This document shows positions 1,617-47,110 of a stretch of 64,000 nucleotides of DNA, one piece after another. The notes under the pieces are model-generated. The model made no database searches, was not told the DNA's origin, and was given only the letters and a program-made list of their open reading frames with translations. This stretch comes from Podarcis cretensis (taxonomy: Eukaryota). Both the position numbers and the translations under genes were made by a program. The stretch is from assembly GCA_951804945.1 (NCBI GenBank), contig OX638149.1:87730001-87794000 (forward strand). The letters run 5' to 3'. Every line of letters starts with the position of its first letter. Positions within the stretch are counted from its first letter, which is position 1.

Positions 1617-1642
1617 GAGAGAGAGAGAGAGAGAGAGAGAGA
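1617..1642. repeat. (GA)n microsatellite in the ZFAND2B 3' UTR
   Basis: Read directly from the sequence. Confidence 0.9.
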
Positions 1643-4800: not shown

Positions 4801-7800
4801 CAGTTTGTTGGCCAGGACTTACCAATCCATTCTGCAGGGCAACCACCGGAGGAGATATGCTTTGTGGCAGAGGAGGTGCTCTTGCCATCTCACTGGCCCT
4901 GTGTGCAAAAAAAGATGTCAACTGTCACTACTTGTGAGGCATGTAAGATGGAGAGGGAAAATCCCCAGGGATAATCCACCAGGGTGCCTTGGAACGTAAC
5001 CCCTGCGTCCATTGGGAGTTGCCTGTGCAATGCTTCCTGAAGCTGTACGGTAGGCTTAGCTGCTATAAGAAGAAAGGTTAGGGGACAAAGCAGACTCGGG
5101 CAGTTAATGTACCTGCTGGAGGTTGGCAGAGCTGCAGCAGCTCTCGTGGCTCGGTTGCTGGGTGTAGTGCTTGTAGGTGTTTTGGCAGGTTTTTGAGCTC
5201 TGGCAATCGCGGCACTCCTGAAACGGGAAACGCAACTCTTGGTAAAAGGAGCACTTCTCTCGCCATTGCAGCAAGCCCTCCCCCCTTCCCCTGAGACTAG
5301 CAAGAATCCACTCCAGCACTATCCTTTCACGCTCAATGTGAACTGTTGACCATCAACATCTGGAGGGCCACAGGTCCCCAACTCGTGTGCTGGAACAACC
5401 AAGGATGGGGAGGAAACCACTGTCTCCTGAAGAATGCGCACCAGCATTACTGCATGGCTGCAGGCCTATGTCTGGCATATGCCAAGCGTTTTGCCCAGCC
5501 CTGCCCTCTGTCCCGCCTTTACCCTGCCTTGGAGAGGGAATGCCCAGGGCCAGCGCAATCATGATCCAGTGGGTGCCGGTGCTTGAGACAGAAGTTGCCG
5601 TGACACTGGTCACACAGAACCTTCATCATCTCTCGTTGCTTGCAGCCAGGCCTCTGACACTTGTTGGTAAAGATCTAGGCAGATGGACACAGTTGTGATT
5701 CAAGACAGTTGGGGGGGGGGAAAGGCACCCAGGACACAGCTGCTTTCTAAATGCATACAAAAGACCTTTGCTCGTTGCAAAATGACCTCTTTGGGGCGCA
5801 AGTCTGGGCAGTGCGCATGGAGGTTCTGGACTGCCCAAATGACAAGGAAATGCTGAACTGCAAGCCTCTAACCAATGAGAAATTACATCCGAATTACGGT
5901 AATCCCCAAGAATGGGCCTCCAGATGCTGCTGGACTACAACTCCCATCATTCCTGACCATGGCCATGTTGGCTGGGGTTGATGGGAGTTGCAGTCCAACA
6001 ATATTTGGAGGACCACACATTTTCCCCCACCCCTGCTCTTCTAATTTGGCTAGCCCCAATTTGGCTCGTAGCCAGTCTGAACTCTGCAGCCAGACTAAAC
6101 TCACTAGTGCTACTCAATTTGGATGTACAGCTCGTTCGTTATCCCAGCCCTTCAGATACCCTCCAGAGAAAGACCCACAGAAATCCCAAGCTGTGGTTGC
6201 TCACAGTTCTGCCATTGAAAGGACCCCTAACCATCTGGACCATACTGCATAGGAACATAGCAAGCTGTGTTATATCAAGATGATTGGTCCATCTAGCTGA
6301 TTGACTGGCAAAGACTCTGCAGGGTTTGGGACAGGGGTCTCTCCCAGCCTGACCTGGAAATTACAGGTACTTTTTTGTAAGAAAACACACATTCTGTCAC
6401 TGAATAATGGCCCCAAACCTGCTTGTGGAACCCAGAGTATGCTGACTTCAGGCACATCAGGCACATCAGATTTTGTGTGTGTATATGTTTTAATATTATT
6501 TTATAAGGAAATAATTTTATATTTCTATATGCATAGAATATTTCTATAGGCATAGAAAAACACAAAATTAAGGTTGCATCCAACTGTTGTATGTCTACCT
6601 ATCTGATTCTGATGGACTTAAAGCAACGTGTCCCACAAGAGGCAGCAGAGAGGATGGATGAAGCCTCTTACCTTGCGCTTGCGCTGAGCTGGGTCTGATT
6701 TGCAGTCCTGGTCAATGTGTGCTCCCACCACAATGTCAGGCATCTCTCCCCGCTTGACAGGGATCGGGATGCTGCAGAGTGGGCACACGGGGACCTGCAC
6801 ATCCTGGGGACAGAACAGATAGAGAGCAGGTTACACAATGGCCCCTGGCCCACTCAATATGAGAGCATACTGGATGCTGCAGGGTCTCCTCATCTCCTAA
6901 GGTGTGCTCCTGTTCATGGTTCCAGAGGGCCGTGCCTTCCAAGGAGAGTATTCTGTTCTCCATCCGCCCCCACCCCCCAATCTCCATGTTTATTTTTTAA
7001 CTGACATTCAAACTTCTGTATCTACTGAGCAGGTGCAGTTTTCACTGGCTGTTTGGGGAGATTCTTTTGGCCACTGGGATACTGTATAGATAGATAGATG
7101 ATAGATAGATGGATGATAGATATATAGATACATGTAAGGTAAAAGTAAAGGATCCATTGACGGTTAAGTTCAATCAAATGTGACTATGGGGTGCAGCACC
7201 CATCTCACTTCAGGCTGAGGGAGCCTGTGTTTGTCCACAGACAGCTTTCCAGATCACGGGGCCAGCATGACTAAACTGCTTCTGGTGCAACGGGACACCA
7301 TGACAGAAGCCAGAGCACATGGAAATGCTGTTTACCTTCCTGCTGCAGCAGTACCTATTTATCTACTTGTACTGGCATGCTTTTGAACTGCTAGGTTGGG
7401 AGAGGCTGGGACAGAGCAATGGGAACTCACCCCGTCGTGGGGATTTGAACCGCCGACCTTCTGATTGGCAAGCCCAAGAGGCTCAGTGGTTTAGACCACA
7501 GTGCCACCCGCATCACACACACAAACACACTTCTGAAATCTTCAGAGTTCCCCAAATAATTTATTTTGTCCATCAGTGGCCCTGTTTTAGTTCAATTTCT
7601 GTTGTCACTCACCAACTAAGTTCACTATTAAAGAGAGTGAACACCATCCCATTAAAATGTAACATCCCATTACAGGCTCTGGTTGGCATTGACCCATGAC
7701 AGGGCCTGCTCAGTGGTGGATCTCCACTTGTGGAATGCCCTCCCTGCTGAGGTGTATTTGTTTCTATCATTACTAACCTTCAGAAGGAATTTTTAAATTG

Positions 7801-17735: not shown

Positions 17736-17953
17736 TATACGTCCTTTGTATGCTGTAATCTGGTCTTTTTCTCAGCCTTGATGGCACTGTCTTTCATTAG
17801 TCATCTTACCAACGACAGCAGAGATTGACTGGAGTGCTTCCTTTGGGCCTCGTAAAGTTCACATGTGTGTTTCTTTCAGGCTGGTCATGGTGAAGATGCC
17901 GCTCTGACTCCGGTTCACCAGCTGGACTCACTGAGAGTGTGGGATGGCTCTAC

Positions 17954-19347
17954 ATGGCCTCTGTAGGGCCAGAAGCCTATAGCCTTGGCCTCAAGAGGGG
18001 AAACCAGTTCCAGGTGGGCATTGCACCAGGGCTGACGGTGCCGCCACTCACAGCAAAGCTTCACGAGAGTAAGGCCTGGTACCTTGCTAAGCAGCAGGTG
18101 AAGCCCATTTGGCAGCTGGAACAGAAGCATGTGACCAATTTTCAGGACCTCCAATCGGTCCACTCAGGGATTTCTTCCCAGCGTCCCCGCCTCTTGTACC
18201 CAGAGTCATTATGTAGTGATACAGCATTCCTGACTTCACCTCCACCTTTGCCCCACGCTCTCCCAAACTTCCTCGGAAGCACCTTGCTCTACCGACGTTC
18301 TTACTTCAGACACAAGCCTTATCGGAGGCTTGAGTCCATCTGTTTGCAGCCAACTTCTTTGGAGAAGAAACCTCTTTGTGCTCCGCTCCCTACCTATCGC
18401 TCCGTTCTCAACAACACCATGACATCCTCAGCCGTAGACCCATTCTTTATGCCGAATACTGCTGCTGACTGTTCCAATCCAGTGTCAAAGGGGTTCCCCC
18501 TAAGCTCAGGGAAGCAAAACTCCAATTCATACAGGCCAGTGCTAAACAATAACTCTTTCCTTCGGCCAACTAGTGCAAAAGTGCCTTTGCAGCAGCAGTA
18601 CCACCAACCGCTGCCACCAGAAAATAAGAAGCTAAAAGGCTTGTCAAGACCTATTGGCTTCTCTTGGACCCACTCTGGTGGAAATGGAGATGGCGCTCCT
18701 GTGAACCTTGAAAGAAAGCTTGGGAAAAACAGTGGCATAACTCTTGAGCAACCCAGTGCCAAATCTCCTCGCTCGGCCATTCACAATGGCGTGGTTCTCA
18801 AAGTGGAACGGCCCTCCTGGCGACTCGAAGATGGTGAGAACAGGTCTCAGAACCTGAAAGAGCAAGATGTGCGGTTGACGGAAGCTATGCGGAAGCTGAC
18901 TGCAAATGGCATCCGGAAAGTTAGTACCTACAACGAATTTGGTCACCGCATTGACAGCTCTTGCCTTATGAATGCAAACTTCCACTCCAGTCTTTTCAAT
19001 CGATGGAAGCCACACATAGTAGCACAGATCACCCCAAAGGACGTACCAGCTGCCACCTCCCCAAATCTGGAGCCTGGTAGCCGCCACCAGAGCCTTATGG
19101 TCACAGAAGCTGCCGATGTCTGCACTAAACGCATCGATGTTCGTTTCTTAGCCTCAAATCCTGAACCTTCCAACCACTGCGCCTTGAGTCAGACTGTCAA
19201 CCACACCTCTGTAAACGCTGGAGAACAAGTGGTAAAAACAGAGCTGTCCCCACGGACTACAGTCTCTGAGGTAGAGACCAAAATTTCCTCTCTTCAGTTA
19301 GGCACGGATACAAAATGGGGGAACCCTGTTACTGTGAAAGAGACCGA
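17954..19347 (+). CDS. TTLL4: TTLL4 coding exon 1 (large N-terminal exon; exon acceptor at 17879/17880)
   Basis: 470-aa ORF 17939-19351, ATG at 17954, GA|GTAAGT donor. Confidence 0.93.
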
Positions 19348-22300
19348 GTAAGTACTCTGGCAAATATGTCTGTTGGGGTGGGTTAGTGTTTCCCTTTCAG
19401 TACTCTTTGTGGCAATAATTGCCAACCTGTAGCCCTCCAAGTGTTGCTGGATTACACTTCCCACAATCCCTGAATCATTGACCATGCTTTCTGTCGGGCT
19501 GGGCGATATCAGCTTTTCAACAGTGCGGTATATCATCAGCCAAACATCGCGGTCTGGTGATATACCGTATTGTTGAAAAAACAAGCTGCATTGGCCTCAG
19601 CCAGTGAGATCCCAGGTGAAACTGCCGCATCTCTCACTGTGGAAACTGAGGCGGTTTCACCCTAGTGCCTAGCGGGCTAGGACAACACAGCTTGTTTGCA
19701 TGGCTCAGCTGAGGCGCAGGAAGGCTCCCAATCCCCAGCAGTGCCCCCCCCCCACTTGTGTGGGAGCCAGCACCGGGCTGGGGGATCCTTTAACTGCTCA
19801 GCTGAGCAGAGCGGCAACCACACATGCCTCAGCCGAGCAGTTCAAAGATGCAGAGGGAGGAAAAAGTTGTATCAACACCTTGCCAATGAAGCTTGTTTCT
19901 CCCTCTGCACAATATGAGGGCAGAGTGGGATGGCGGTTTCACTCCGCAGTATATCACTGGTGAAACCGCTGCTTCTCCTGAGTCCCTCTGCTGGCAGCGC
20001 CTGCTGGAAGGAGTCAAGAGTCTTGACTTCCTCCAGCGAGCATTACTAGCAGAGGGACTCAGGAGCGATGGTAGTTTCACCAGTGATATACCGCTGAGTG
20101 AAGCCGACTTTGTGGTCTGCTCCTCATACTGGCCCTGGGCAATATATTGATATGTCGCTCAGGCCTAGCTGACTGGGGCTGATGGGTGTGGGAGTCCAAC
20201 AGCATCTGAAGGTTAATCACCCTTTTCTTATGATAAGGACTGTGTTTGATATAGTAGAACATGCTAAAGAACTTATAGCAAGGTGTTCCTGTGATGTAAG
20301 CATATTTAAGCTTGGTCATCAATCGGTGTTTGATACGCCTTGGATGGTTTTGCAGCCTTCACTGTCTCCAAAACGTCTCTCAAATCAGATGATAATTCTG
20401 CTTTACCTCTGGTAGCCCGTTGTTTTGACAAGTATGCCACAAGTCAAGTCCAAAATTTGCCACTTGGTCCAGCAGGGGCACCATGCCAGAGCCCTTTCTC
20501 TCCACACCACTTCTATCACTAACATGGGTTAATGTTTATGATAGTTATTTGGGATATCTTGCCTTGTCTGTGATCTCTTGGTCTGTTGTTGGGTGTAGAG
20601 ATCTTTTTGCTTTGCTAACTGAGAGGAGTTACAGAGCTTCACTTTAGGGCTGTAACCCTTTGTGTTGTAGAGCTGCAGTCAACCTCCCCCTGCTGGACCA
20701 AGCGGAGGTGGAAGATGTAGAGGAAGAGCTCCCGGACGGCTTGGAAGATGCCTGCAGTCAGGATGAGGAGGGCGAAGAGGAGGATGGGGAAGGTCAGCAG
20801 TCACATTTATTTCCTCTCTTCAAAGTACAAACAAGCCTATTCACCACACATAAAACAGAGAAGGGTTTTCATACACTGATTATTCTGTTAATACAAATAT
20901 ACTAATTACTGTCATTACAAAACATCTTGAACTAGTCAAAAGCGAAAACGATTCCTACTACAGTTGTCCATGCTTACTATTAGGGCATGGATATATTGCA
21001 AATCACTCTATAATATCAAGAGAGAAAGAACTGTATTGCAAAAAATAAAATTGCTAGCTTGAATACTATAATTTGCCTTGTGGGCACCTTCAGCCTATGC
21101 ACTTTCTACACTTGTAAAACTTGTTTTGAGTGATATTTAGTGAACTGCTATTGTATGCAAAGCAACAGTCTGATATCCATTTACATTTTACTGGTGCATT
21201 TTATCACGGACACGGAGCAATGGTTCCAAACTACAAGAAAGAAGATTCCACCTAAACATTAAGAAGAACTTCCTGACAGTAAGAGCTGTTCGACAGTGGA
21301 ATTTGCTGCCAAGGAGTGTGGTGGAGTCTCCTTCTTTGGAGGTCTTTAAGCAGAGGCTTGACAACCATATGTCAGGAGTGCTCTGATGGTGTTTCCTGCT
21401 TGGCAGGGGGTTGGATTTGATGGCCCTTGTGGTCTCTTCCAACTCTATGATTCTATGATCAAGCATTCAGTTAATTGTTTTCTGGTTACCCAGAGACAAA
21501 CTTTTTAAATCTACTGTCTTGAAACAGTTCAGAGTGAGATAATTTTACCATTGAATGTACAAGGCCTGACAATATTTCTAGATCATAAACAGCAGTAATA
21601 GCATTCAGTGCTGAGGCAGAGCAATACTAATTCACTGCTGCTGGAAGGGCTTCTGTATCCTATGCAACCCAGCCAGAAGGGTGGAGTATAAATAAAATAA
21701 TTTGTTGTTACTACTACTACTACTACTACTACTCAGTCTAAGAAGGGAGAGCCTAACCTACAAATATGTGTGATGCTTACAGCTGTGCCCCAGTTTAGCT
21801 GTTCCACCAACAAATCTGTCATGGTGGTGGCATATCTTGAATTCTGCAGGCATGATACAGCTTTTGTCAAATCCCATTGCCCCTCAGCTAGCAGATCTTA
21901 ACTACAGAACTTCATCTTCAATATTCCTGCTAGGAATGTTCTGATCAAACCCAGTAAATACTTGTGTGTGGATTTATTATAATTGTTGCTGTCTTGCTAC
22001 GGTTTGGGACAATGCTACTCACCCTCAGTATTGACCCATTCTGTCCCCCATACCTAATCTTCTTGCATGAGAGTTTGGAAGAAAGCTGCACTTAGGGTGA
22101 TTACTGTAGTTCTTGCTAACATTGTGATGTAGCAGCCTGACATTTTCAGCTGTGTTTTAGTTCAACCATTTTATTGCTTTAGTATATTGCACTGTGGTTC
22201 AACACTCTTATGATATCCTTTTGTAAATAGAAGGCAAACTTTAACTTACGGGGAGTGACATAGGGAATGATATTCTATCCTCTTGTAACCTTGGCATGGG

Positions 22301-25300: not shown

Positions 25301-28300
25301 CCTGAGACTGTTGCAGTTCTTGAGCATAAACAGAATATATATATCAATGTGATGTTCAGAGAATAGTCTGTGAACTGCCCTATTGCCCACAGGAAACAAT
25401 GACTGGCTGGGCTGCTGGGGCCATCACATGAAATCTCCGGGGTTCAGAGTTATCAGAGAACATCAGAAGGTATGAGATATGGTCATGACTACAAAAGGAC
25501 ATATTAAAGAATATAATACAATGTGGGGAAAGGGCATGAGATGCATTTCACTCTGGCCTTTTCTGCCTTTTTCTCCATCTGAGCGCTGCATGTAGCTGAT
25601 ACTTTCCTGTTTTCTGCTGCAATGTTCTCTTTCCCCTAGTCCCTTAATGTTCTCTTGGTGGCTGTGCCTCTGAAGGAGGCAGCCTAGGTTTGCAAGACAC
25701 TATATGGTAGAAACTTCAATGCTGGCATGCTTCCTTCATGGGAACTACCTGTTGGGAGTACCAGCCCAGGGGCTTTTGGGGTGGGGGTTGTATGGACAAT
25801 CTAGGTTATTGCAGCTATCCCTGAGTTTGGAGGAGAAGGTACCCCCCTGTTGAACCTTTATCTTACCTTTTTACCAGCTAGGATACAGCAGGAAACCTCA
25901 TTTCTCCTTTCTTGTCTCTTCCTTTCCCTCCTGCAGTTGAATCATTTTCCTGGCTCATTCCAAATTGGTCGGAAGGACCGTCTGTGGAGAAATGTGTCCA
26001 AACTGCAGTTGCGCTTTGGGAAGAAGGAGTTCAACTTTCTGCCCCAGTCCTTCATCCTTCCTCAGGATATCAAGCTGCTCAGAAAGGCTTGGGAAGATTG
26101 TGGGAGCCGACAGAAATGGATTGTGAAGCCGGTGAGGGAGGGCACAGATATGGTTCGACCTGTATAGAGATAGGGGTGTGTCCTTTGTGTGTCTTCTGCC
26201 ATGGTATAGCCATTCTTTCCCTTGCCTTGCCAGTTTCAGGTTTTCTTGGATGAATCTGATTTTTTTTGATGCATTTCATCAGGCTTTAGGACTTGTGTTG
26301 GGACAGACTGCCTTTGGCATGAGCTCTGTTCTGTTTTTGTATTGTGTGGTTTTTATTCTGCTTTAGATTTTAGGTATTTCGTTTCATGGTTTTAATCTCT
26401 GTAAACCACTCAGAGAACTTAAGTAATTAGATGGTACTGAAGTGCAGTTAACAATAATTAATGGTAATGTAAACTACACCCCCCACCTTCCTCTAAAGCA
26501 ACAATGCATATTCTCTTCTCATAGATGGACAGTTTCTACTTGTTTATTCTGGTTCCCTCTTGACTATATCATAGCTTTAGCCCAATAGTCCCTTTGGCTG
26601 TCAGTCTCCCTTTTACTGCAAGTAGGACTTGCACCAGTCTGAAAACCCACCTGTCATCATCTTCTTCATTCATTTCCTTGATATTGGGAAGGACAGGAGT
26701 AATCCTCCCTGGTGTATTGTTTTAAAATATTCTGGGTTTTTATTCTTTGCAACCTCGTAAAGGTTGTGAATAAAAGTGCATCACATTTGCATTTCCCCAT
26801 GTCATTGAATCTGAGGTGTTTGTGCATTGAATGTTTTAGGTGAAAAGAGGCACCCTTAAACATGTAAACGAGGAGAGAAGACTGGGAGACATGCAGGGGG
26901 TGCCTCCGTCTGTTCCTAGGAGCCTCAAACATTTCCTAAAGAGAGAGAAAGGCGCCCCCCCCTTTTCATGAGGACTAAAGTATTTTCAAAACCCTAGATA
27001 TTCTCAGACTCGACAGGTGCCACAGTCTGTACTGTACTGCATGACTACAGCCAGGCGTGTTTTTGAAACTTCTAGGGAATTAGCTTATCAGTCAGTGACA
27101 GCAAGGAACTCAAAGCTGCTATACACCAACTTGTGAATATACAAAGCTTTTATTGACTTAAAAAGCCTTTGCTGACATGCTCAGTCTTTGAAAAAGCTGC
27201 CACAGCAATTGATTTTAACATACTGCTGAACTTAAAATTACATTGAGATTTTTGTGAGGCTGCTTCTTTGGAGGCTTGTCTTAAGACTGATAGTATTAAA
27301 ACAAATTCCTTTCATGTACCCCACCTTCCCAGACTATAATCGAATGTTCCAGCTTTGAATTGTAGGATAGCAGCAAATGGATGCAATGTGAACATCGCTC
27401 TCTGTCTTTCACTCACTTTAGCCAGCATCAGCTAGAGGCATCGGCATTCAGGTCATCCATAAGTGGAGCCAGCTGCCCAAGCGCAGGCCACTGCTGGTGC
27501 AAAGGTAAGCAAGTCCCCCTGCCCTGTCGGTCTTTCCCCACCCTGCTAACAAAAGATTGGCTTTAATATCTTAAGGTATCAAAGAACCAACTTGTTTCTG
27601 ATTATGCTTTCTGCTGTTGTAAAACTTTACATTGTTCTGTGGGGTTTGTTTGTTTTGCTTCTGCTTCCAGCTAAAGAGTAGAGCAATTGTGGAATTGTTA
27701 CGATATTGACATGGGTTCAGAAATATGGCTAAAGGAGACCTTTTGCTGTGGCAAGGAGTACCATTTGTTGAGAAAGCTGGCATTTCATCAGCAGTCTCCC
27801 AAACCCCTTAGATCTCCATCAAGCCTCTCTACTGGTGACAATGTCCTGAACTTATTGAGACTAAATCTCAGGGCTACTCTATGATGTGGTTCCTGTATGC
27901 TCACCTGTCTTTCTGTTGCAGGTACTTACATAAACCCTACCTCATTGGTGGAAGCAAGTTCGACTTGAGGATTTATGTTTACGTCACATGCTATGATCCA
28001 CTTCGGGTTTACTTGTTCAAAGATGGACTTGTTCGTTTTGCCAGCTGCAAGTAGGTTTCCTATGAATTGGTAACCTCAGAAAGAGGGTTGGGTTGACTGC
28101 TTGTCAGAAGACCAGCTGAGATTCATGAATAGCAGATTAAATATGTTTTCTGGAAACAGTAGACTAACTATTGGTTTCAGGTGTCATTTGTATTATAGCC
28201 TGTGCACATCCTTTTGGTTTAAGCAGTGACTATTGAGAACCAATTATTTGCTTTCACTGTGTAGCTGAGTCTGTGTGCTTTTAAAATAGCCAATTATTAA

Positions 28301-34300: not shown

Positions 34301-35819
34301 AGCTAGGATTTCGTGTTAAGTTCAAACCAGGCCGTTGTCTTAGCCTTTCTTATTTTTACTTCGGTATATATCTGACATAAATAAGTATTTGTAGCATTTT
34401 TATACTAACCTGTAACACTAAGTATTCTGGGCAGTGTACATTAAAAAAACATGTAAAATGTAAAAACAACATGAACACAAAATCACAAACAAAGCTAAAT
34501 AAAATAAAATAAAACCAGCAACAGATGAACCAGTAGTACCAAATGTCTAAAAAAAACTTTTGACCATGTTTTTAAGTAGGAAAGCCTAGCTGAATAAAAG
34601 GCCTTGACCTATGGCTACTGAAAAGTCGGCCTCACCTCACCTCACTTGGCAGGGGTGGACTTTTAAAGATGATTTTCAGGTTGGGCTATATATATGGGAG
34701 GAGATAGTCCTTCAGATAACCTAAAGGTAAAGGTAAAGGTAAAGGTAAAGGGACCCCTGACCATTGGGTCCAGTCGTGACAGACTCTGGGGTTGCGGTGC
34801 TCATCTCGCTTTATTGGCCCAGGGAGCCACCATTTGTCCGCAGACAGCTTCCGGGTCATGTGGCCAGCATGACTAAGCCACTTCTGGTGAACCAGAGCAG
34901 CGCACGGAAATGCCGTTTACCTTCCCACTGGAGCGGTACCTATTTATCTACTTGCACTTCGATGTGCTTTCGAACTGCTGGGTTGGCAGGAGCAGGAACC
35001 GAGCAATGGGAGCTCACCCCGTCACAGGGATTCGAACCGCCGACCTTCTGATCGGCAAGTCCTAGGCTCTGTGGTTTAACCCACAGCGCCACCCATGTCC
35101 TTCAGATAACCTAGCCCCAGGTTATTTAGGGCAGGAATGGAGAACCTGCAGCCTTCCAGAAGTTGTTGGCCTTCGTCTCATTCTAGCCAGCATGGCCCAT
35201 GGTCAGGGATGATTGGCGTTCTAGTCCCAGAACATCTGGAGGGTCACAGATTCTCCATCTCTGTTTTAGGGCTTGAAAAGTTAATACTTGCACTTTGAAT
35301 TATCCCCTGGAATAGATTAGAAGCCAGTGTAGATAACAAAGCACAGGCATGATTTAATTTTTCAGCCACTTCCTGTTAACAATCTCGCTGCCCTGTTTTG
35401 GAGCAGCTGAAGTTTCTAGACTGTTTTCAAGGCAGCCTGAGGTACAGCACATTGTGGTAATCAGGCCTAGGCAGTGGTGAGCCATAAGCCCTAAATCCTT
35501 CTTTCCCATCAAATACAGGGATGACACAGTAGTAATAGAAAGACTGCCGTTTCCTTCAGATGGGTGAAAATGATATGCTATGGAAGTGGTTCTCTCTGTG
35601 TGTGCTCTATTCTGTGCTGCAAGACAGATCTGCCTCTCTCTCAGGTTCTGTCTTCTTCCCAACAGCAAAATCCTTATCCAGCGAGATGGGGAGGAGCCAG
35701 TCCGAAGCTCTGAGCCAAACCCCTGCACTCAAAGCTTACCTCAGATTAAATACACAGCTGGAAGTCTCAAGAAACCCACAATCCCTCGGACCCTCAGCAA
35801 CTCAAGCCTAGTGAAGTGA
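17954..35819 (+). CDS. TTLL4: Tubulin polyglutamylase TTLL4, complete spliced CDS of 18 coding exons, about 1138 aa
   Basis: N-terminus [13 protein letters not shown]...[13 protein letters not shown] domain motifs [60 protein letters not shown] and [11 protein letters not shown]. All 17 introns GT-AG and phases consistent. Confidence 0.96.
19496..20167. mobile_element. Non-autonomous hAT-like DNA transposon nested in a short MITE
   Basis: Imperfect TIRs GGGCTGGGCGATAT / ATGTCGCTCAGGCCT, internal inverted repeats; interrupts the palindromic MITE (halves 19420-19495 and 20168-20225). Confidence 0.6.
20671..20792 (+). CDS. TTLL4: TTLL4 coding exon 2 (acidic, [17 protein letters not shown])
   Basis: 122 nt, TAG acceptor and GTCAG donor. 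Confidence 0.9.
21207..21459 (+). mobile_element. CR1 LINE 3' end fragment
   Basis: Typical CR1 terminal sequence ending TTCCAACTCTATGATTCTATGAT. Confidence 0.85.
21708..21733. repeat. (TAC)n microsatellite
   Basis: Read directly from the sequence. Confidence 0.9.
22693..22756 (+). CDS. TTLL4: TTLL4 coding exon 3 ([20 protein letters not shown])
   Basis: 64 nt, long pyrimidine tract, phase fits. Confidence 0.88.
23114..23238 (+). CDS. TTLL4: TTLL4 coding exon 4 (...[18 protein letters not shown])
   Basis: 125 nt, conserved motif. Confidence 0.93.
24365..24475 (+). CDS. TTLL4: TTLL4 coding exon 5 ([25 protein letters not shown])
   Basis: 111 nt, conserved motif. Confidence 0.94.
25393..25469 (+). 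CDS. TTLL4: TTLL4 coding exon 6 ([16 protein letters not shown])
   Basis: 77 nt, conserved motif. Confidence 0.94.
25937..26131 (+). CDS. TTLL4: TTLL4 coding exon 7 ([17 protein letters not shown]...WIVKP)
   Basis: 195 nt, TTL domain. Confidence 0.95.
27422..27504 (+). CDS. TTLL4: TTLL4 coding exon 8 ([27 protein letters not shown])
   Basis: 83 nt, TTL domain. Confidence 0.95.
27922..28050 (+). CDS. TTLL4: TTLL4 coding exon 9 ([22 protein letters not shown])
   Basis: 129 nt, TTL domain. Confidence 0.95.
28776..28898 (+). CDS. TTLL4: TTLL4 coding exon 10 ([11 protein letters not shown]...CQGHKW)
   Basis: 123 nt, TTL domain. Confidence 0.95.
29226..29324 (+). CDS. TTLL4: TTLL4 coding exon 11 (ALKALWSYL...[10 protein letters not shown])
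   Basis: 99 nt, TTL domain. Confidence 0.95.
29765..29899 (+). CDS. TTLL4: TTLL4 coding exon 12 ([25 protein letters not shown])
   Basis: 135 nt, catalytic ExN motif. Confidence 0.96.
30339..30476 (+). CDS. TTLL4: TTLL4 coding exon 13 ([18 protein letters not shown])
   Basis: 138 nt, phase 2-2. Confidence 0.94.
31212..31314 (+). CDS. TTLL4: TTLL4 coding exon 14 (...[13 protein letters not shown])
   Basis: 103 nt, phase fits. Confidence 0.9.
31914..32131. mobile_element. Tc1/mariner (Tigger/pogo-like) MITE, copy 1
   Basis: TIRs CAGTGGTACC.CGGGTTA / TAACCCGAGGTACCACTG with TA target duplication. Confidence 0.88.
32510..32720 (+). CDS. TTLL4: TTLL4 coding exon 15 ([30 protein letters not shown])
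   Basis: 211 nt, conserved motif. Confidence 0.95.
33332..33402 (+). CDS. TTLL4: TTLL4 coding exon 16 ([14 protein letters not shown])
   Basis: 71 nt, conserved motif. Confidence 0.93.
33624..33706 (+). CDS. TTLL4: TTLL4 coding exon 17 (WSIPRSHL...)
   Basis: 83 nt, CAG acceptor and GTGAG donor, phase fits. Confidence 0.85.
34722..35100 (-). mobile_element. Sauria SINE, full length, with TSD
   Basis: (TAAAGG)n tail on the plus strand, tRNA-like head (GGTGGCGCTGTGG...GGTTCGAATCCC on minus), flanking direct repeat TTCAGATAACCTA at 34711 and 35101. Confidence 0.9.
35132..35263. mobile_element. Short palindromic hAT-derived MITE copy
   Basis: TIRs CAGGAATGGAGAACC / GATTCTCCATCTCTG, same interior as 5913-6035. 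Confidence 0.7.
35666..35819 (+). CDS. TTLL4: TTLL4 last coding exon (...TQSLPQIKY...SSLVK*); alternative in-frame start at 35645
   Basis: Pyrimidine tract plus [11 protein letters not shown] resembles the mammalian TQTLPVIK. TGA at 35817-35819. Confidence 0.8.
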
Positions 35820-36597
35820 CGGGGGACTGAGTGAGTGGCCAACTTCCCCTTCCTTATGGTCTCAGGAGGGGGCGTACGTGACCTACCTCAACAGAAGCTA
35901 GGAGAGCCAGCATGGAAGGATGGGAGGACCTTTCGTCCAGGACGCCCACGTAGAACTATTTTTTTGGAAAGGGAATTGGGTCGAAGAGGAGATGTTTAAC
36001 TTGGTTAAAAGGGACAAATGCTCTGTTTATAGTTTTTTTTTATGACAAAGGAAGTTGCTAAACACAGAAGCTTGGAAAACCTATTTAACTTTTAGTGTGA
36101 GTTCCTTATAGTTTATTGACCTTGCCATGATCGTCACCACTTGAGCCATAAGTGCCTCTCGCTGTTAAGTGCCGACATACTAGGTTTCGCCAGACACTGA
36201 CAACCTCAATGACCATTTGTGAAATGAGCTGCTACCATGAGGCAATTGCATGTTTGCAATTGACATAATAACCCATGTATTCACAACATGACACAAATTC
36301 CTTATTAGCTGAACAGATGGGAAAACAAACTTAAGAATGGCTTAACACCAGTAAATCAGGCAGATTTTTTCATAAACTCTCTGGTGCATGGCCATAAGAG
36401 AAATAGGCTTAAACAGTGAGGGAGATGGTGGGGAGTCTAAGAATATTCTTATTATCTAGGTACACACCCATGTTTACTTAGTTCCTGGGTACAGATTTCC
36501 TGATGGACTTTAGTTATGGAAGGTATTTTCTACTTACTTTTTACTCGGGAGAAGCAGATTTTGCAGTGTGCTGGTCCAAAGCACAAATGTGTAGCTT

Positions 36598-38277
36598 TTT
36601 TAAAAAAAATATATTAAGTTTTTCACAATTAATATAAAAACAAAAAGAAAAGAAAAAAGACAAAAAGATAACAAAGATACAAAAATACAAAATTAAAACA
36701 TACAATTACCATTACTTATTTCCGTTAACTTATTTCTCAGACCTCCTCTCACCTCCCCTTCTTGTATTCCAATTTAAATTATCAATACAGCAGATCCTTA
36801 TATCCAAATTTAAACATCAGATACTTAAACATCATTACTCATTCTTCATCATTTTTCCTAAAGTCGACCAAAATTTCCCTTCCACGGCTTTCCCCAGTTC
36901 CAAACAAGTAACAAAGCAGGATAAAAATAAAACAAGTTATAGTTATATACCCTTTGGATTCCCAGACTCCACCCACCCCTTTCCCGGTTACCGTCTCCAA
37001 CAAGTGTTTATCAATTCAGTATCTTGTCTAGCCTGGAGATCTCACATCCAAGGCTTTTAAATCTCTTTCAGTTCCTCTCTGCCGGCCTTTTTGATAGTCC
37101 TTAACGTTAAACCCCAGATTTCGGAAAGGCTTCGGCCCATCAGGATCCATGTTTTTCCCAGCCAGCCCTCCATACTTAAAAAGAGAACCTATAAGGTACC
37201 CCGACATACTCCTTTCAAGTCCAAATGTCCCCAAAGCTCCAATTTCCGCCTTGATCAAATTTGTAATCCTTCTGTCTTCAGATCTCCACAAAAGGGTATC
37301 TCTCAGTTTCAGGCTCACCAATTCAGGCCAGGCTTTCCGCTTCAATTTGTTATTCTCCTTTATTGCTTTCATGTTAGACCACAAATTACAGCTCTCATTT
37401 GACATCTGGGAGGTTACAGCTCCTCCTTCCTTCTCTTCAGAAACAGCACATATCTCCTCTTCCATATTCTCAAAACATTCAAGTTTCCCTATTTGCTCAA
37501 TTGTATAAGCTCCATGCTCCAAGTCCTTATCAACTTCAACAACATTGTTTGCTGCTGAGACCAAAGTTGTAACACTTGTAGCCAAAACATCAATTTCCCC
37601 TTGTAATTTTCTCAAGAGAACAAATGTTCTTTCCAATTCAGTCTGAAGTCTCCCATCTCCAGCCATTGTTGTAATGTCCTAAACCCCCTCTAGGGGGATT
37701 TTAGTTTGTTAATGTTTTTCAGCTCAAGTCCAATAGCCAATTTATTGTAACAGTCCTTCCTTATTTTCAACAAATTGTAACAAGTATAACCAGCAGAAGC
37801 AACAGAAACAAAGTTCTCTTTTTCCTTCTGACAGCCAATTTGACAGCTGTCAAAGTCCTCAATACTTCATCAGCAGGCTCTCTCGCGGGACACTCCCGGG
37901 TCCGGGGTGTGTGTGAAACTTCAGCTCCCACAATTAATCTTTTATCCTCCGGTAAAATTTCTTATAATGTCAAAGCGTGAGGGTTAAAGTCTTTTAAAAA
38001 GGTCCTCTCGACCTTAGATCGCCGCAGGAGGAGCAGAGAACTCACAGCACCGCGCCGCACCCCGTCCCCGTTCCGAAGCCTTTAAAAAGGCTCCTTCACG
38101 GTTTGGGGGGCGCAAATGGTGCCCGCCGAGTTACCAGGTTCACAGGCATCCGCGCCTGTGATTTTTAAGGGTCTCCGCGTCGCCGCCGCGGACAAGACCC
38201 GATCCTGCAGAGCCGATTCCCTCCGGAGCTCGGAGGGAATCCGCCATTAAACGATGGCGCTAACCCGGAAGTCCCTC
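36598..38277 (-). mobile_element. Non-autonomous L1-type (HAL1-like) retroposon, 1680 bp, apparently full length
   Basis: Flanked by the 16-bp direct repeat CACAAATGTGTAGCTT (36582-36597 and 38278-38293). Minus-strand 5' end GAGGGACTTCCGGG...ATGGCG is CpG-rich. Single ORF, T-rich 3' UTR, short A tail, TT|AA target site. Confidence 0.85.
37028..37666 (-). CDS. 212-aa ORF of the retroposon; N-terminal coiled-coil-like segment, possibly ORF1p-derived
   Basis: Intact ORF with a strong Kozak context (ACAATGG), centred in the TSD-bounded element. Hydrophobic heptad pattern in LQTELERTFVLLRKLQGEIDVLATSVTTL. Confidence 0.55.
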   Translation of the reverse strand: MAGDGRLQTELERTFVLLRKLQGEIDVLATSVTTLVSAANNVVEVDKDLEHGAYTIEQIGKLECFENMEEEICAVSEEKEGGAVTSQMSNESCNLWSNMKAIKENNKLKRKAWPELVSLKLRDTLLWRSEDRRITNLIKAEIGALGTFGLERSMSGYLIGSLFKYGGLAGKNMDPDGPKPFRNLGFNVKDYQKGRQRGTERDLKALDVRSPG

Positions 38278-40757
38278 CACAAATGTGTAGCTTAAGCACT
38301 GGTGGTGGTTTCTTAAGACAGGAGGAGCATCTCCTTTCGGTTTTAGCTATGTGCTGGGACTCAGAAAAAGGTGTGCTAAGGTGGCTGCTTCTTGTTCCTC
38401 TCTGGTTTAGGGTCAGGTGGTTATCTGTGCTAATCCTCCTAGCATTCATACACACCCTAGAACACTCTCCAGTTCTTTACCCCTAAAGAAGACTATAATT
38501 TAGCCCAAGTGGTGCTTGGCTGTATAATTTTTGCTTTAAGTACTGCATCCTCAGTCAGTGCCTTCTCCCTGCTGCTGGAGAATTCTGCCTTTTCTCCACT
38601 TGTTATACTTTACTCCTAATCTGAATCTGGTACTGGATCCCAGTTTTGGGTACACTTTTCAGTTGTGTGCTTATGTCCGGAATGTGTTGGTGAACTTGCA
38701 CTTACAGCCAGCAAGGGCCATTTGCTGTCCTGATCCCTGGGCACTGATAGATGCATCTGTTGCTCTACTTGACTCCTGATACCTTGACACTTAGGAGCAT
38801 TTCCTGCCTGTACTCGGACACCACGTGCAGGAAGCTGCTAAATTCTGAGCCTTGAGGGTGAACTCAACAACTTTGGCTGCAAGAAATATATCTGTTTAAT
38901 GAAGGATAGGAGTCCTTTTGTCTCATTTTACACACACACAATCAGATGCTATGGACAGCATGAGGCATGCAAGTCCCCTGATGCATCACTGTGCAGTCTT
39001 CTATTTTTTCCATGTAGCAGTAATGATATTCCAAATGCCTGTATTTCTCACTATGGTGGTGAGATGTGCTTAGGTGGCTACTTGTGATATAAATGGCCAG
39101 AAAAAGGAAGGCATCATTCCTACAGTGCATCTCTCCAAATAGATTGCTTCTCCATTGGTCAGGGCAGTATTTATGAATCACACAGTCCTGGAAATCTCCT
39201 GGATACAACTGGATACAGCAGCTGTAATCTAGAATATAGATGCAGTGTGCATTTATTGTTAAAGTGGTTCAAGTCATTGCAGAGGGGTGTGAGATTCCCC
39301 AGAGCACACAACACCAAAGCAGCAGGGCACCTCTTTCTTACTACATCTATCATTTGCTTATCCTAAGTAACCTCAGTGACTAAGCTCTTAAGAGCAGAAA
39401 AGCTGGGAAACAGAGAGTTGGAAGCCAAGCCAGGCACACTGGATGTAGTTGTGCTTTCTCCTGGGGCCTTAGCAGTAGAAGCAGCAGCGCTCCTTGCATC
39501 ATGCCAGGGAATGAGTTGCTAGAAATCATTTCAGAGTCTGCCTTGCAGACAGCGACTTACCTTGCATTTCTGTCTTACTTCACTGGCTGTATTAACACAG
39601 GTATCTATCTTGGCGAGACCTTTATGGCATGATCCCCTGAATTAAAGCTTCTTTTCCCCTTGGCTTGTTATTTCCATCCCCTTCAGATTCATCATAACTT
39701 CTCTCCAGCTTGGCTCTTCTCTTAGCCAGCTTGGATGTCGCTGAGGTTGGGGAGATAGAAGTGGAGACGGCTTGCTTCTTCCAAGTTCATACTCTATATG
39801 TTCCTTGCTACTAGCTTCATCAGTTGACAGTTATCAACCTTCCCTGCAAAACTTTGTAAACAGAGGGGAAGGGTGTGTTGCACTAATCTCTATTGCAAAA
39901 CAGCCTTTTCTCCAAAAAGCCAACAGAAGACAGTCTAATCCTTTAGGAGACTTGAGTGTTGAATTTTTGTTTTAATTTCTTATGCCCTTTTTGCAAGCTA
40001 AGCCGGGCAGGTGCTGAGATCTTGGTGAGGCAGTGCATTAGCAAAAGGAGGGCAAGCCAGTTTCTAGTAAGGTAATAAAACAAGGGTAGAGGGAGAGTTG
40101 GCTTCCTACTGCTAACATCCTCAATATATGTTCAATTTTAACTTGGTTAAAACCTCTCTCCCTGTTTGCCTGGTACACAAAAATGAAGGCTTGCATTTTG
40201 AATCCTCTTTTAGGAACCAGCCTATGTGTCCTAGCCCTGCAGCCGGTTTTATTTCACTGTCTCCTACTGAAAACTGAGTGTCATGTCCCTTCTTTGGGCT
40301 CTGTAGGAGGTTGGTGCCTAATGTGTCCCTCTCAAATCTCATAGCGACAATCTTCTGTGAACTAGCCTGACTCCTAGGATTGTATTGAATGACCTAAAAG
40401 AGCTAGCTGTGTAGAAGTGTGAAAGTGGAGAGGCCTCTTCGAGTGTCCTAAAGAATTCTCCCAGCTGGCCGTCTCCCTGAGCCGCCTTATACTCTTGCCA
40501 CCACCACCCACCCTTCCTGACTTGAGTAATTACGAGCAAACAGGTGTTCAGCACTCCTCCAATGTGGTCTACACAGCTATCTCTGTTTCCTGGTATTAAC
40601 AGGCATTGCTGGTTCTCTCCTTCCCCCATGCCCCATCAGTATTTGAACCTTAGGTGGGTACTACTCTGCACAAAATGTCATGGATCGCTCAATGTAAATT
40701 GGTGGAACTCAAGAGATCTAGGGAAAAGGCATTGCATTTCTGGCCAAATATCACCCT

Positions 40758-43900: not shown

Positions 43901-46039
43901 GGCAGTGGGCATCTGTAACCATTTCCTTTCTTGCCAAGAGCCAATAAGGCCTGTGTCGCTGAGTTCAGGCTACAAGTAGTGGAGATAAACTGAGAGAGGA
44001 GGGGCAGCAACCATTCTCTTTTTAGGAGCCTGACTCATTCTCCAGGAATTCTCCACAGCGGGGAGGAGAGGCCAATCCTAACTGGGTTATGTTTAGTATG
44101 TGTAGATGGGGAGGTGAAGACAGCAAGCACTTGCATCAAGATCAAGGCTCTGAGGCAGGACCAGAACTGCATGTAAAGATAAAAGGGGTGCCTGGTCATA
44201 GCTAGCCATAAGCAACAGGGGGAAACAACCTGCTTCAGGTGTCGCCAGAAGGGGGAACTGGCACTGGCCAAGACCAAGTTCTCCTTATTTACTGTTTGTT
44301 TTTAAAAATGTATATTATCCGGCTTTTATTCCATGAATCCAAAGGGGCAAACTGCAAACAAAAGTAGGCAAAATGATTGGGAGCAACAAGTACTGCCAAA
44401 TTCAAAACAAAACACCAGTAGTTTTACAGAGGGCTGGGAAATCCTGGAGAGCCACTGTCAACTACTGAGCTAGATGAACCAATGGTCTGACTTTGTGTAA
44501 GGCAGGTTCCTATGTTCTTATCAGAGTGCAGGAGGGGAAACCTGGGCCGTGAGTTTGAGCCCCACGTTGGACAAAAGATTCCTGCATTGCAGGGGTTGGA
44601 CTGGATGACCCTCGAGCGCCCTTCCAACTCTACAATTCAAGTCAGAAATTGTTCTCCCGCTCAAGTAAGTTTAAATTGTTTTAAAGGGGGACTAGATAAA
44701 TTCATGGAGGATAGATATGTGTATTGTACTAATGCTTCTGAAAGCCAATTGCTAGGGGCCACACAGGAGGAAAGTGCTATTGCACTCCTCTCGTGCTTGT
44801 ACCTTTCCTAGAGAGGCTTGAGGCTGGCTGCTGTAAACAACAACAACACAGGATGCTTGACTAGATGGACTCTTGGCCTAATCCAGCCAGGCTCTAGTTA
44901 TGTTACTATGAACATCTATCTTCATGCTGCTCTATAAACTAATAAGCTGTTTCATGCTGCCTTTATTGGGCAACCAAGCTGTATGCTAGTCCACATATAA
45001 ATTGTAAGGACTTTTAATTGCGGAGATCGGGTATAGTCAATTTTAGTGCTTCCAATCCCTGCAGCTAATCCCAGGGAAGGTCAATTTGCAGCCCATGGGT
45101 CACATCTGGCTTCTATCCAAACAGTCTTATCTCTACTGGTCTTGCTAAATTTTAATCAAGGTATGATAAACATTGTGCGCACAGAGAAAATGTGTTTTAA
45201 ATGAATGTGATGATGTCACATTTCACTGTTCTCTCCCTTCCTTTCCCAGGCTTCCTATGTTATGTCTTGCTTTACGTGCTGTGGGGGTAGCCAATGTGGT
45301 GCCTTCCAGATGTTCTGGACTTACAACCCTTAATGGAACAAGTCAACACATGGTCTAAAATTATCTTGTAATGCATTTTCTACGATTCCAACTGAAGTTG
45401 TAATTGTGTGCACACTTTTACATTTTCTCCTGCCATTTCAGGTAACATACCTATCAAGCACTACTGAATCACAAGCTGCTTTGCTCCACAGAGATTCATG
45501 AGGGCTGCAAAGCAACTACATTGCTTCAGATAAATGAGTTGGCTAGGTGAACATCCAGGAACAAGTGGCCTATTTTAAAAGTGTTATCATGGCCCAAACC
45601 ATTTTGGAAATATATGAGCTCCTTTTCTCCAGATGCTTTTGTAAAGACAAACTTTACTAGCATTTTTAAAAAGAACACTGGGAATATTATGTTGCTGCTA
45701 GAACATGGGAAGGGGATGAGTTTGTGGGTAAAAGGATATGAGGGACTGGTGGGGAAAAGGCTGGAGGATTCATCCATTAAAATTACAATTTTACACTTAT
45801 ATCCTGGATACTACAATAGGGTTGTTTTTTTTGTTTGTTTTTTAATGCAACAGATGGAAGTTGCATTGCTTTCCAATCAGTACTCCTTGCGGGTGGGAGT
45901 GACTTCGCCAACTCAATGTCTGCCTACCTCTCAACTTTTAAAGGCATAGGGGCCTTCTGAAAGAAAGAAGCCCGCTGCAAGCGGGAACAGTCTCTGCCCT
46001 GGGGAGCCAGGGTATAGTGTCCCCATTGCACCAGGGACT

Positions 46040-47110
46040 GTACCTCTGGAACAGCTCCTCTCGGCCTCGGCCGATCACTGGCGTTTCACTCCTTTGCTTC
46101 TTCCTCCCGGGAGGGGCTCCCCCCCCCCCCGAATAGCCTCCATCATCTCCTCTCCTCGCCCCACCTCCCACCCCGCGAGACCGTGTCCCACCGCGCACAG
46201 GCTTCTGTGCCCCGACTTCCTCCCTTCGCACATTCCGTGATTTATTTACAGCCGGAGAGCGAGTCGCTCTCTCTCCCCCCTCCCCCCCCCCCGCCCTCCA
46301 GGGCAAACAGGAGGCTTCGCCCGAAGCTTCCCGAGCGAGAGGCCGCGGAGCCCGCTTTCCTCGCCGCATCCCTCGCCCCAGCACCCCTCGGCGCCTGGGA
46401 GAGCCCCGCTCTCGGCCTGCCCTGCTCTCGGGAGGCGGCCGCGCGCTGCCCTGAGTCCCCCGGGAGGCGGCGGGAAGGCCCTTCTTCGCACAGCGCGGCA
46501 GGCGGTGGCCCCTCCTGGCGCCGCGCGCACCCGGGGGTTGCTGCCAGGCCCGCCGCCTTCCTGACACGGACTGGCTCCCCGGCCAGGTGCCCGAAAATAG
46601 CAGCTGCCTCGGCATGGAGCGGGCGGCGGCGGCGGCGGCACCGGCCTCGGAGCAGGTAAGCCCGGCGGAGAGAGCTCCCCGAGAAAGGGCTTCGCGGCGG
46701 GTGCCTTTCTGCCGGCCAGGCCGGGCCCGGGGAGCACGGACGGAGGGCACTTCCTGGCGCAACAACGCCGCGACCACTTCCTGCTTTCGCTTGCCGGGGG
46801 CGTGGGGCTAGCGGGGCTTACCTGAGCCCCGGAACCTGCTCCCCAAGCTCAGTGGACACCTTTGAGTGTCAAGAACGGAGCTTTCGAGCACGTGCGGAGC
46901 GCCGCCTGCCCCTCTGCGTTTTCTCTCCCACACCTTCGGGTGCGATTCCTTGGCCCGTAACAATTTCGCGTTTAGAAATTGAACTCGGTGCTCCGACTCG
47001 TCTCCTGCCCATTTAAATAAATCTTATGCATTAATGCGATCCGCGCAAGTGTTCGGGTGAACAAAAACAAAAGCTCTGAAGACAGAGAAACGCACGCGCG
47101 TTGTGTTTTT
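46040..47110 (+). promoter_or_regulatory. CpG island, PRKAG3 promoter and first exon
   Basis: Very high GC and CpG density with GC boxes; contains the ATG exon and a CAG|GTAAGC donor. Confidence 0.8.
46614..46655 (+). CDS. PRKAG3: PRKAG3 coding exon 1 ([14 protein letters not shown])
   Basis: GGCATGG Kozak start inside the CpG island, CAG|GTAAG donor. Confidence 0.75.

Follow-up and report, generated by a model that had tools for sequence, protein, structure and literature searches.

The 64-kb window, the whole stretch of DNA analyzed here, carries on its minus strand a 1,680-bp retroposon copy (Table 1). It consists of a CpG-rich leader of 611 nt, an ORF of 212 aa, a T-rich trailer of 430 nt and a T8A4 end; re-reading the sequence returned the same parts and lengths that an initial annotation had described. 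The copy is bounded by an exact direct repeat of 16 bp, CACAAATGTGTAGCTT, which is present only twice in the 64-kb window. No further copy with two or fewer mismatches was found in that window, where 0.06 would be expected by chance. The perfect 16-bp target-site duplication (TSD) reported earlier around 1,680 bp was thus confirmed.

The empty site was found in two other organisms. One contig each in runs X5 (organism B) and X8 (organism C) joins position 36581 to 38278. At this joint 1,696 nt are skipped, 16 letters fit both sides, and the 16-mer occurs once. In run X1 (organism A), contigs span both junctions, one over 36460-36624 and the other, with 0 differences, over 38248-38653. The preinsertion site reads ...GTGCTT/AAGCTACACATTTGTG/CTTTGG, i.e., the 5′ flank ends in ...GCTT and the TSD begins with AAGC. 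The TT/AAGC site, so far only reconstructed, is therefore seen directly in contigs of other organisms. These data show a discrete insertion event with an exact empty site.

Table 1. Features of the retroposon copy and its insertion site
Feature	Position	Strand	Basis
TSD, element's 5′ side	38278..38293	.	Exact 16-mer; single copy in X5 and X8 empty-site contigs
Candidate internal promoter and 5′ RNA module: leader head, CpG-rich, strongly structured	37978..38277	-	CpG o/e, RNA fold, depth
ACTTCCGG, ETS-type core, nt 6-13	38265..38272	-	Motif match only
Inverted pair GCGCCAT ... ATGGCGG, YY1-like cores	38241..38260	-	Motif match only
Remaining leader, CpG-poor, with CCCCCTAGAGGGGG palindrome directly before ATG	37667..37977	-	Sequence, CpG o/e
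ORF, 212 codons plus stop	37028..37666	-	Start context acaATGg; relatives to E = 6.5e-49
Heptad-repeat helix, candidate coiled coil, codons 4-56	37499..37657	-	13/16 a/d positions hydrophobic
Most conserved family part, codons 182-212, R..L.FN.KDYQ..R.RGTERDLRASDVRSPG-stop	37031..37123	-	Alignment A2
T-rich trailer (3′ UTR), 430 nt	36598..37027	-	Sequence
3′ end: hexamer AATATA, like a variant poly(A) signal, then T8 and A4	36598..36615	-	Sequence
TSD, element's 3′ side	36582..36597	.	Exact 16-mer and empty-site contigs
Whole retroposon copy, 1,680 bp	36598..38277	-	Missing as one block in organisms B and C, present in A

The 5′ leader and the 3′ end

Read on the minus strand, the element starts with GAGGGACTTCCGGG, and nt 18-37 hold the GCGCCAT and ATGGCGG cores. 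Over the leader's first 400 nt, CpG o/e is about 1.1 versus 0.26 across the window, in agreement with the CpG-rich leader of about 611 nt annotated from this start. The leader head folds far more stably than expected (z = -5.06; matched by 0 of 200 shuffles), and no unusual RNA fold was detected in the second half of the leader (z = -1.2). The head is also the most repeated part of the element, with a summed depth of about 4,100 to 4,900 times that of the flank in three runs, and by contig depth its repetition exceeds that of the ORF middle about 40-fold. Loose contig ends at 38249 and 38275 indicate that other copies share the 5′ terminus but have different flanks, and CCGGAAGT is kept in the variant 5′ ends of other copies (loose end at 38249). 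The proposal that the element is not a 5′-truncated L1 thus holds: the copy is complete, its 5′ terminus recurs next to other flanks, and there is no ORF2. The leader may function as an internal promoter.

An Rfam E-value scan of positions 36400-38500 returned only a chance CRISPR-DR match, located on a palindrome, and revealed no tRNA-, 7SL- or 5S-derived Pol III head as would be found in a SINE. Three upstream ATGs precede the ORF in the leader, a feature that we counted against the explanation preferred below; the one inside the YY1-like ATGGCGG core starts a uORF of 35 codons.

No unusual RNA fold was found in the trailer (z = +0.82), whose bin 36716-36839 ranks second in repetition within the element. 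The terminal A run is A4, or at most A6 when the two A's that open the TSD are included, and AAGCTACACATTTGTG then follows. There is no canonical AATAAA. The A tail is only 4 to 6 nt long despite the youth of the insertion, which was also counted against the preferred explanation.

Copy number and age of the family

Contigs at least 85% alike on the insert numbered 5,170 in X1, 3,760 in X5 and 1,367 in X8, and those at least 99% alike numbered 699, 570 and 148, respectively. The flanks have a flat depth of 88, 87 and 22 in the same runs, and depth on the insert sums to 6e3 to 4e5. The copy number is high, and copies are very similar. As thousands of contigs cover the insert without piling up on the flanks, the copy at this locus is young and belongs to a large family with recent activity; it is not a lone retrocopy. 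This bears out the view of a young, multicopy family without reverse transcriptase (RT), given 1,367 to 5,170 contigs per run on the insert next to single-copy flanks, and the possibility that only a single copy exists does not apply. Neither a second copy nor an L1 partner was found in the window by blastn and tblastn. One run marked 'RNA?' may be DNA, since it covers insert and flanks alike.

The flanks diverge from the window by about 1.0 to 1.15% in organisms B and C and by about 0.3% in organism A. A young age is supported by the perfect TSD, this low flank divergence and the CpG o/e of the leader (about 1.1 versus 0.26). The differences in presence and absence between close relatives suggest that the family may still be active.

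The ORF and its protein family

The 212-aa ORF exceeds the longest ORF in all 2,000 shuffles of the element (maximum 198, mean 72), and all other reading frames of the element are closed. With 1,680 bp and a single ORF, the element has no coding capacity for RT or endonuclease (EN). The N-terminal coiled-coil pattern noted at the outset is well founded, as 13 of the 16 a/d positions are hydrophobic and the AF2 model based on a 21-sequence alignment has a helix at residues 4-50 (pLDDT 73 to 90). This helix is the sole confident part of the model, whose mean pLDDT is 51; AF2 from the single sequence gave a pLDDT of 39. The low confidence for most of the protein was counted against the preferred explanation.

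Pfam gave no match to the 212-aa protein, and Foldseek of the AF2 model against the PDB returned nothing. The structural comparison suggested in the initial annotation yields one confident helix and no match. A search of the ESM Atlas with the protein gave scores of at most 0.79 and no lead. Matches from sequence and profile searches of the PDB were discarded as heptad-repeat noise (engineered coronavirus HR1 repeats), with a best whole-sequence E of 0.0021 but domain i-Evalues of at least 11. Capture of a host gene was considered for neuroguidin, which matched start to start, and was rejected when its E value of 0.43 weakened to 1.1 with a larger profile. A word-based search with the single protein found nothing, and it also missed the relatives later found by HMMER.

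About 20 diverged relatives of the protein, with 28 to 51% identity, were collected. HMMER (phmmer) over 1.84 billion representative proteins identified eight small relatives, with E values from 6.5e-49 to 6.6e-6, and a profile search added six, one of them from Podarcis lilfordi; no related loci were found in metagenome contigs. The family alignment, A2, comprises 21 sequences. Family proteins are about 170 to 215 aa long and have in common the heptad helix at the N terminus, a variable middle, first acidic and then basic, in which indels keep the frame, and a conserved, basic C-terminal tail with the near-invariant end GTERDLRASDVRSPG-stop. Three near-invariant columns of A2 are broken in the studied copy (G19R, K155S and S206L); at position 206, nearly all members have S where this copy has L. 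These departures, too, were counted against the preferred explanation.

Origin and mobilization of the element

We consider it likely that the insert arose recently as a full-length copy of an abundant family of non-autonomous non-LTR retroposons in lacertid lizards, mobilized as follows. Transcription would start from the element's own CpG-rich, hairpin-rich 5′ head, yielding an mRNA-like transcript for the protein of about 170 to 215 aa described above, with its coiled coil, variable middle and conserved basic tail. This protein would probably multimerize and coat or mark its own RNA in cis. The RNA would then be copied into the genome by RT and EN supplied in trans, most likely by L1 ORF2p, an enzyme that would nick 5′-GCTT/AA-3′, prime on the short A end and leave the 16-bp duplication.

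L1-mobilized (TPRT) insertions are expected to show a TSD of about 7 to 20 bp, a cut at a TT/AA-like site and a 3′ A run; the element has an exact 16-bp TSD, the TT/AA cut and an A run, albeit short (A4-6), and from these features L1 is the most likely helper. No RT, EN or Transposase_22 was detected by a Pfam scan of the open stretches of at least 90 aa in the window. With no such coding stretch and no second copy in the window, the helper and any L1 ancestry are argued from the hallmarks of the insertion. Because we infer the promoter, the L1 ORF2p helper and the L1 descent, 'half-L1' is used here as a label for a lifestyle and not for a tested membership.

A true half-L1, i.e., a lizard L1 that lost ORF2 and retains a cut-down ORF1p, with the trimerizing coiled coil kept, the RRM and CTD lost and the stalk joining L1 RNPs, is conceivable, though we lean against it. 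The architecture is that of an L1 front end plus tail, with a structured CpG-rich 5′ UTR, a YY1-like core, an ORF that opens with heptads and an A end, and the excess repetition of the 5′ head over the ORF middle looks as if the head were common to other families. However, the Pfam models for Transposase_22, trimer and dsRBD matched none of nine family members at E values up to 10, in keeping with the earlier statement that no RRM or CTD can be recognized. Neither L1 ORF1p nor ORF2p was among the phmmer matches over 1.84 billion proteins, the profile searches of the PDB returned coiled-coil noise but no L1 ORF1p chain, and Foldseek was blank. As the family matches neither Transposase_22, a PDB chain nor an L1 protein, descent from ORF1 is not supported by these searches, although coiled coils carry too weak a signal to settle common descent either way. 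It is just as conceivable, and held with the same reserve, that the protein is not an ORF1p remnant but an independently acquired or newly evolved coiled coil with a conserved basic tail, allowing a non-autonomous RNA to compete in cis for L1 ORF2p.

Mammalian HAL1 elements ('half-L1'; Smit 1999, Bao & Jurka 2010) are described in PMC5753468 as lacking ORF2 and presumably mobilized by L1. Like HAL1, the lizard element is non-autonomous, has no ORF2 (a single 212-aa ORF in 1,680 bp), keeps one coding ORF, is presumed to be mobilized by L1 and amplifies in lineages of its own. Unlike HAL1, it is found in a squamate host and its protein gives no signal of Transposase_22, RRM or CTD and has no detectable L1 relative, whereas HAL1 ORF1p is recognizable; of the L1 ORF1p homologue that characterizes HAL1 (Transposase_22, with coiled coil, RRM and CTD), only a heptad helix was found. 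We therefore rate the element as HAL1-like in lifestyle and not as a member of HAL1. No description of HAL1-like elements in lizards was found in the literature searched. With L1 the element shares a structured CpG-rich 5′ UTR, a YY1-like core near its start, a first ORF that opens with a heptad coiled coil, the TT/AA target, a TSD of about 16 bp and an A end, but it lacks ORF2 (EN/RT), measures 1.68 kb where L1 has about 6 kb, ends in a very short A tail and encodes a protein in which ORF1p cannot be recognized.

It is unlikely that the ORF is a mere passenger, in which case the family would in effect be a long non-coding L1-mobilized retroposon whose frame is open only through youth. Of the 18 best-supported differences between the ORF and other copies, 14 are non-synonymous and 4 synonymous, which is the ratio expected under neutrality with 22% synonymous sites, so that constraint at the residue level is not visible among near copies. 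The three uATGs, the low AF2 confidence past the first helix and the absence of a named domain also fit a passenger. In contrast, about 20 relatives at 28 to 51% identity are open from the same start to ...SPG-stop; in-frame indels have arisen in them several times independently, the C-terminal motif is near-invariant, and the ORF of the studied copy is longer than in any of the 2,000 shuffles. Near copies moreover keep the frame inside the ORF and not outside it. Among the well-supported indels listed, only two are internal to the ORF, a +1 and a -1 that lie 4 nt from each other in a single contig, and both ORF-internal skips (93 and 255 nt) are multiples of three; leader and trailer have ten uncompensated indels of 1 to 2 nt and skips of 34, 21, 70, 52, 86 and 64 nt. 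The expectation of an ORF conserved among copies is thus upheld for the frame, which is kept and open in diverged relatives, but not for near-copy substitutions, which occur at the neutral ratio. As judged from these alignments, the ORF has been retained in frame over the long term.

Even less probable is a helper other than L1, namely another squamate LINE (Bov-B/RTE, CR1 or L2). The very short A tail after T8 would suit such a helper, being unlike young mammalian L1 insertions, as would a TSD that starts with A after T, as in Bov-B TSDs. Nevertheless, a 16-bp TSD at TT/AA together with an A end is the pattern left by L1, and short TSDs, or none at all, are usual for CR1 and L2. In Podarcis, Bov-B is characterized by a 'Tn-TA' signature and a (CAA)n tail, and an (ACCTTT)n 3′ repeat is also a Sauria-SINE-like criterion (PMC13295347); no T run (TTT) precedes the TSD by about 10 nt, and the tail of the element is T8A4 and not (CAA)n, (ACCTTT)n or another microsatellite.

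A single processed retrocopy of a host mRNA, as its mRNA-like layout (5′ UTR, CDS, 3′ UTR, A end and TSD) might suggest, is refuted by contig depth limited to the insert, with thousands of related contigs confined to it, and by a diverged protein family across many assemblies. Our preferred explanation, a non-autonomous family mobilized in trans, does share with processed retrogenes and SVA/LAVA-type composite retroposons a Pol II-type RNA, L1 retroposition in trans, a TSD and an A end. Retrogenes, however, are single events, whereas the lizard family has hundreds to thousands of related pieces, and SVA/LAVA-type families lack a family-specific conserved ORF of the kind present here.

The element involves no new principle of transposition. 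To our knowledge, mammalian HAL1 is the only known case of a non-autonomous L1 parasite that keeps a protein. The lizard family is a young and abundant squamate family whose sole gene encodes a small coiled-coil protein that has no RNA-binding core. If the protein is indeed independent of ORF1p, the family would represent a class of protein-coding L1 parasites distinct from HAL1 and currently active in wall lizards, with hundreds to thousands of copies. Its insertions offer many recent markers for the population genetics of lacertids, and the family provides a natural system for the minimal protein need of an L1 parasite, be it marking of the RNA in cis, entry into the L1 RNP, or nothing.

Structure and surroundings of the insert

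The 16-mer CACAAATGTGTAGCTT is present in exactly two copies in the window, with no further match among the 64 kb when up to 2 mismatches were permitted (chance expectation, 0.06). These copies form the target site duplication (TSD) around an insert of 1680 bp, and the arrangement reported in the initial annotation, i.e., a leader, a 212-aa ORF, a T-rich trailer and an A tail, was read as such on the minus strand. In the reconstructed pre-insertion site, ...GTGCTT|AAGCTACACATTTGTG|CTTTGG, the duplication begins at a TT|AA junction, in agreement with the empty site proposed earlier. The initial observation was thus confirmed. An ORF of this length arose in none of 2000 shuffled versions of the element (maximum, 198 codons), and the CpG observed/expected ratio is ~1.1 over the first 400 nt compared with 0.26 across the whole window. 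The leader also contains three upstream ATGs, which had gone unmentioned.

Features of the element and of its surroundings
Feature	Position	Strand	Description
TSD	36582-36597 and 38278-38293		exact 16-bp repeat, CACAAATGTGTAGCTT
Element	36598-38277	-	1680 bp between the TSD copies
Leader		-	611 nt, starts GAGGGACTTCCGGG; inverted GCGCCAT/ATGGCGG cores at nt 18-37
ORF	37028-37666	-	212 codons; start context acaATGg
Trailer		-	430 nt, T-rich; ends AATATA-T8-A4
Palindrome near the 5' end	38212-38244		strong; perfect 11-bp stem, GATTCCCTCCG-AGCT-CGGAGGGAATC
Palindrome directly before the ATG	37676-37714		strong; CCCCCTAGAGGGGG
TTL match	25805-26164	+	
Three further TTL matches	between 26.2 and 36.0 kb		

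The first 300 nt of the element form a series of hairpins, the perfect 11-bp stem at 38212-38244 in the leader among them, with a fold (z = -5.06) that was equalled by 0 of 200 shuffles. Folding is unremarkable over the remaining leader (z = -1.2) and over the trailer (z = +0.82). An Rfam scan of the element returned nothing besides a chance match to CRISPR-DR21 (E 0.3), caused by the palindrome before the ATG.

The element lies antisense to a plus-strand TTLL4-like gene, downstream of its recognisable TTL-domain exons, and ~11 kb upstream of PRKAG3-like exons coding for a CBS domain. It touches no recognisable coding exon, and no TTL match was found from 38.3 to 45.5 kb. An open stretch of 470 to 485 aa without a Pfam match (17894-19348, plus strand) precedes the TTL-domain exons and is probably the large N-terminal exon of the TTLL4-like gene, with the TTL matches as its probable ligase exons. 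Among the open stretches of the window, matches to a CBS domain (PRKAG3-like) and to UIM also occur. Between 45529 and 47013, long open stretches overlap in five of the six frames (e.g., minus-strand 45941-46807 and plus-strand 46018-46656). Pfam matched none of them; this region looks stop-poor and is probably GC-rich or of low complexity.

Age of the insertion and extent of the family

Logan contigs from four public runs were mapped onto 35600-39300 of the window; being contigs, they are uninformative on expression, and a run labelled 'RNA?' spans the flanks as well and may be DNA. One long contig in each of the runs X5 (labelled organism B) and X8 (organism C) joins 36581 to 38278, skipping 1696 nt, with 16 letters that fit both sides; it represents the exact empty site, in which the 16-mer is present once. 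Contigs of X1 (organism A) span both junctions of the element (36460-36624, and 38248-38653 with 0 differences). The flanks diverge from the window by ~0.3% in A (7/2059 positions) and by ~1.0 to 1.15% in C and B (19/2005 and 23/2005, respectively). As the site is empty in B and C but filled in A, the insertion postdates the split between A and B/C or is still polymorphic. With the rate that PMC13295347 applies to squamates (0.0013 per site per Myr), ~1% divergence corresponds to ~4 Myr, which we take as a rough upper bound for the insertion. The unbroken TSD and undecayed CpGs agree with an age at or below this value, so that the recent insertion initially proposed is borne out.

The proposal of a multicopy family also held. 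Flank depth is flat and single-copy (88, 87 and 22 in X1, X5 and X8), whereas the insert draws 5170, 3760 and 1367 contigs, respectively, of ≥85% similarity, 699, 570 and 148 of which reach ≥99%. The depth summed across the insert ranges from 6e3 to 4e5; it does not equate to copy number and serves only as a relative profile. In this profile, the 5' head (38080-38327) reaches ~4100 to 4900 times and a trailer bin (36716-36839) ~900 to 2500 times the flank depth, while the middle of the ORF (37336-37583, codons ~28 to 110) reaches only ~50 to 150 times. Depth is low where the family protein alignment is most variable, and high over its conserved C-terminal half as well as over the trailer and head. 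This fits either better conservation of the ends between subfamilies or their presence in further families, such as an L1 or other RT-less elements. The repeat level of the first ~250 nt of the element is ~40-fold that of the ORF middle, and this head may circulate alone or be common to L1. Other copies halt at the same 5' terminus (...CCGGAAGTCTC, followed by unrelated flank), so that the 5' end seen here is the true end of the family. Runs of nine studies, labelled with ten organisms in all, contain words from the stretch; no second copy was found in the 64-kb window.

An orphan protein and the maintenance of its frame

Searches with the 212-aa protein gave no match in Pfam or in a word-based protein search, a single chance match in PDB sequences (E 0.43), and no lead in two ESM Atlas searches (best scores, 0.76 and 0.79). 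With phmmer against 1.84 billion representatives, we found eight small relatives of 154 to 215 aa, known solely from Logan assemblies (E 6.5e-49 to 6.6e-6, 34 to 51% identity), and a gene model from Podarcis muralis in which the final 60 residues align with residues 21 to 80; neither L1 ORF1p nor ORF2p was among the matches. A profile search added six members, including one Podarcis lilfordi hypothetical protein. PDB profile searches yielded only heptad-repeat noise, and a match to the neuroguidin N-terminus faded with a better profile. The P. muralis model, XP_077778988.1, is ERV Env-like up to ...SVDPW, after which its last 60 residues are 50% identical to the retroposon protein; its cluster-mates in P. 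raffonei and P. lilfordi have the Env membrane anchor in that place. This suggests that, in P. muralis alone, the env copy is interrupted by a family copy, as a further lineage-specific insertion.

An alignment of 21 family sequences revealed a conserved start (MA.DGK.Q.EL.R.F.L.G.LQ), a variable middle, acidic then basic, with several independent in-frame indels, and a near-invariant end (R..L.FN.KDYQ..R.RGTERDLRASDVRSPG-stop). The N-terminal coiled-coil pattern noted at first is sustained by a clean heptad pattern over residues 4 to 56, hydrophobic at 13 of 16 a/d positions, and by AlphaFold2, which with the family alignment predicted a single confident helix at residues 4 to 50 (pLDDT 73 to 90; remainder below 50 to 65). 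Foldseek found no match for the predicted model. An RRM and a CTD are the defining parts of L1 ORF1p. Both are absent from the retroposon protein, as had been thought: beyond the blank Pfam result, neither Transposase_22 nor any other consistent family match appeared in nine scanned members. The protein is therefore an orphan, composed of a coiled-coil head and a conserved basic tail.

Several features argue that the ORF is kept by selection. Relatives with 28 to 51% identity retain an open frame that begins and ends as it does here, and their indels are in frame. Among near copies, the only well-supported ORF indels shown are a +1 and a -1 separated by 4 nt in a single contig. The two skips within the ORF span 93 and 255 nt, each a multiple of three. 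In contrast, the leader and trailer carry ten uncompensated 1- to 2-nt indels and skips of 34, 21, 70, 52, 86 and 64 nt. However, among base differences that separate this ORF from other copies, the 18 with the best support comprise 14 residue-changing and 4 silent ones, exactly the neutral expectation (22% synonymous sites), in a small, selected sample of 40 of 300 variant rows. This copy also breaks three near-invariant columns of the family alignment (G19R, K155S and S206L), and may already carry damaging changes. In our reading, the frame and both ends would be maintained along amplifying lineages, with the middle residues evolving almost freely. The 93-nt (37116-37210) and 255-nt (37289-37545) skips are element variants in organism B (X5); the latter takes out roughly the variable middle, also missing from shorter family members.

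Mobilization and relation to half-L1 elements

Because the element encodes neither RT nor EN, its copying must happen in trans. A TT|AA junction, a 16-bp TSD and an A end make up the L1 pattern, and the element is most likely L1-dependent, judging from these sequence marks. The Bov-B/Sauria-SINE signature described for Podarcis (PMC13295347) combines TA at the cut site, a T run ~10 nt before it and a tail of (CAA)n or (ACCTTT)n repeats; it is absent here, both at the target and at the tail. Some doubt on an L1 helper comes from the A run of just 4 to 6 nt and the lack of AATAAA, unusual in so young an L1-type insertion. No L1 coding sequence was found in the 64-kb window.

Mammalian HAL1 is non-autonomous, lacks ORF2 and has one ORF (PMC5753468). 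The element shares these properties, but its ORF fails the defining test of homology to ORF1p, and we thus regard it as HAL1-like by lifestyle rather than as a HAL1 member. A search of the full texts in a literature collection found no description of squamate elements of this kind. The interpretation given in the initial annotation is supported as far as it could be tested: the insert is a complete and young copy from a wall-lizard family of protein-coding retroposons that is abundant and lacks RT.
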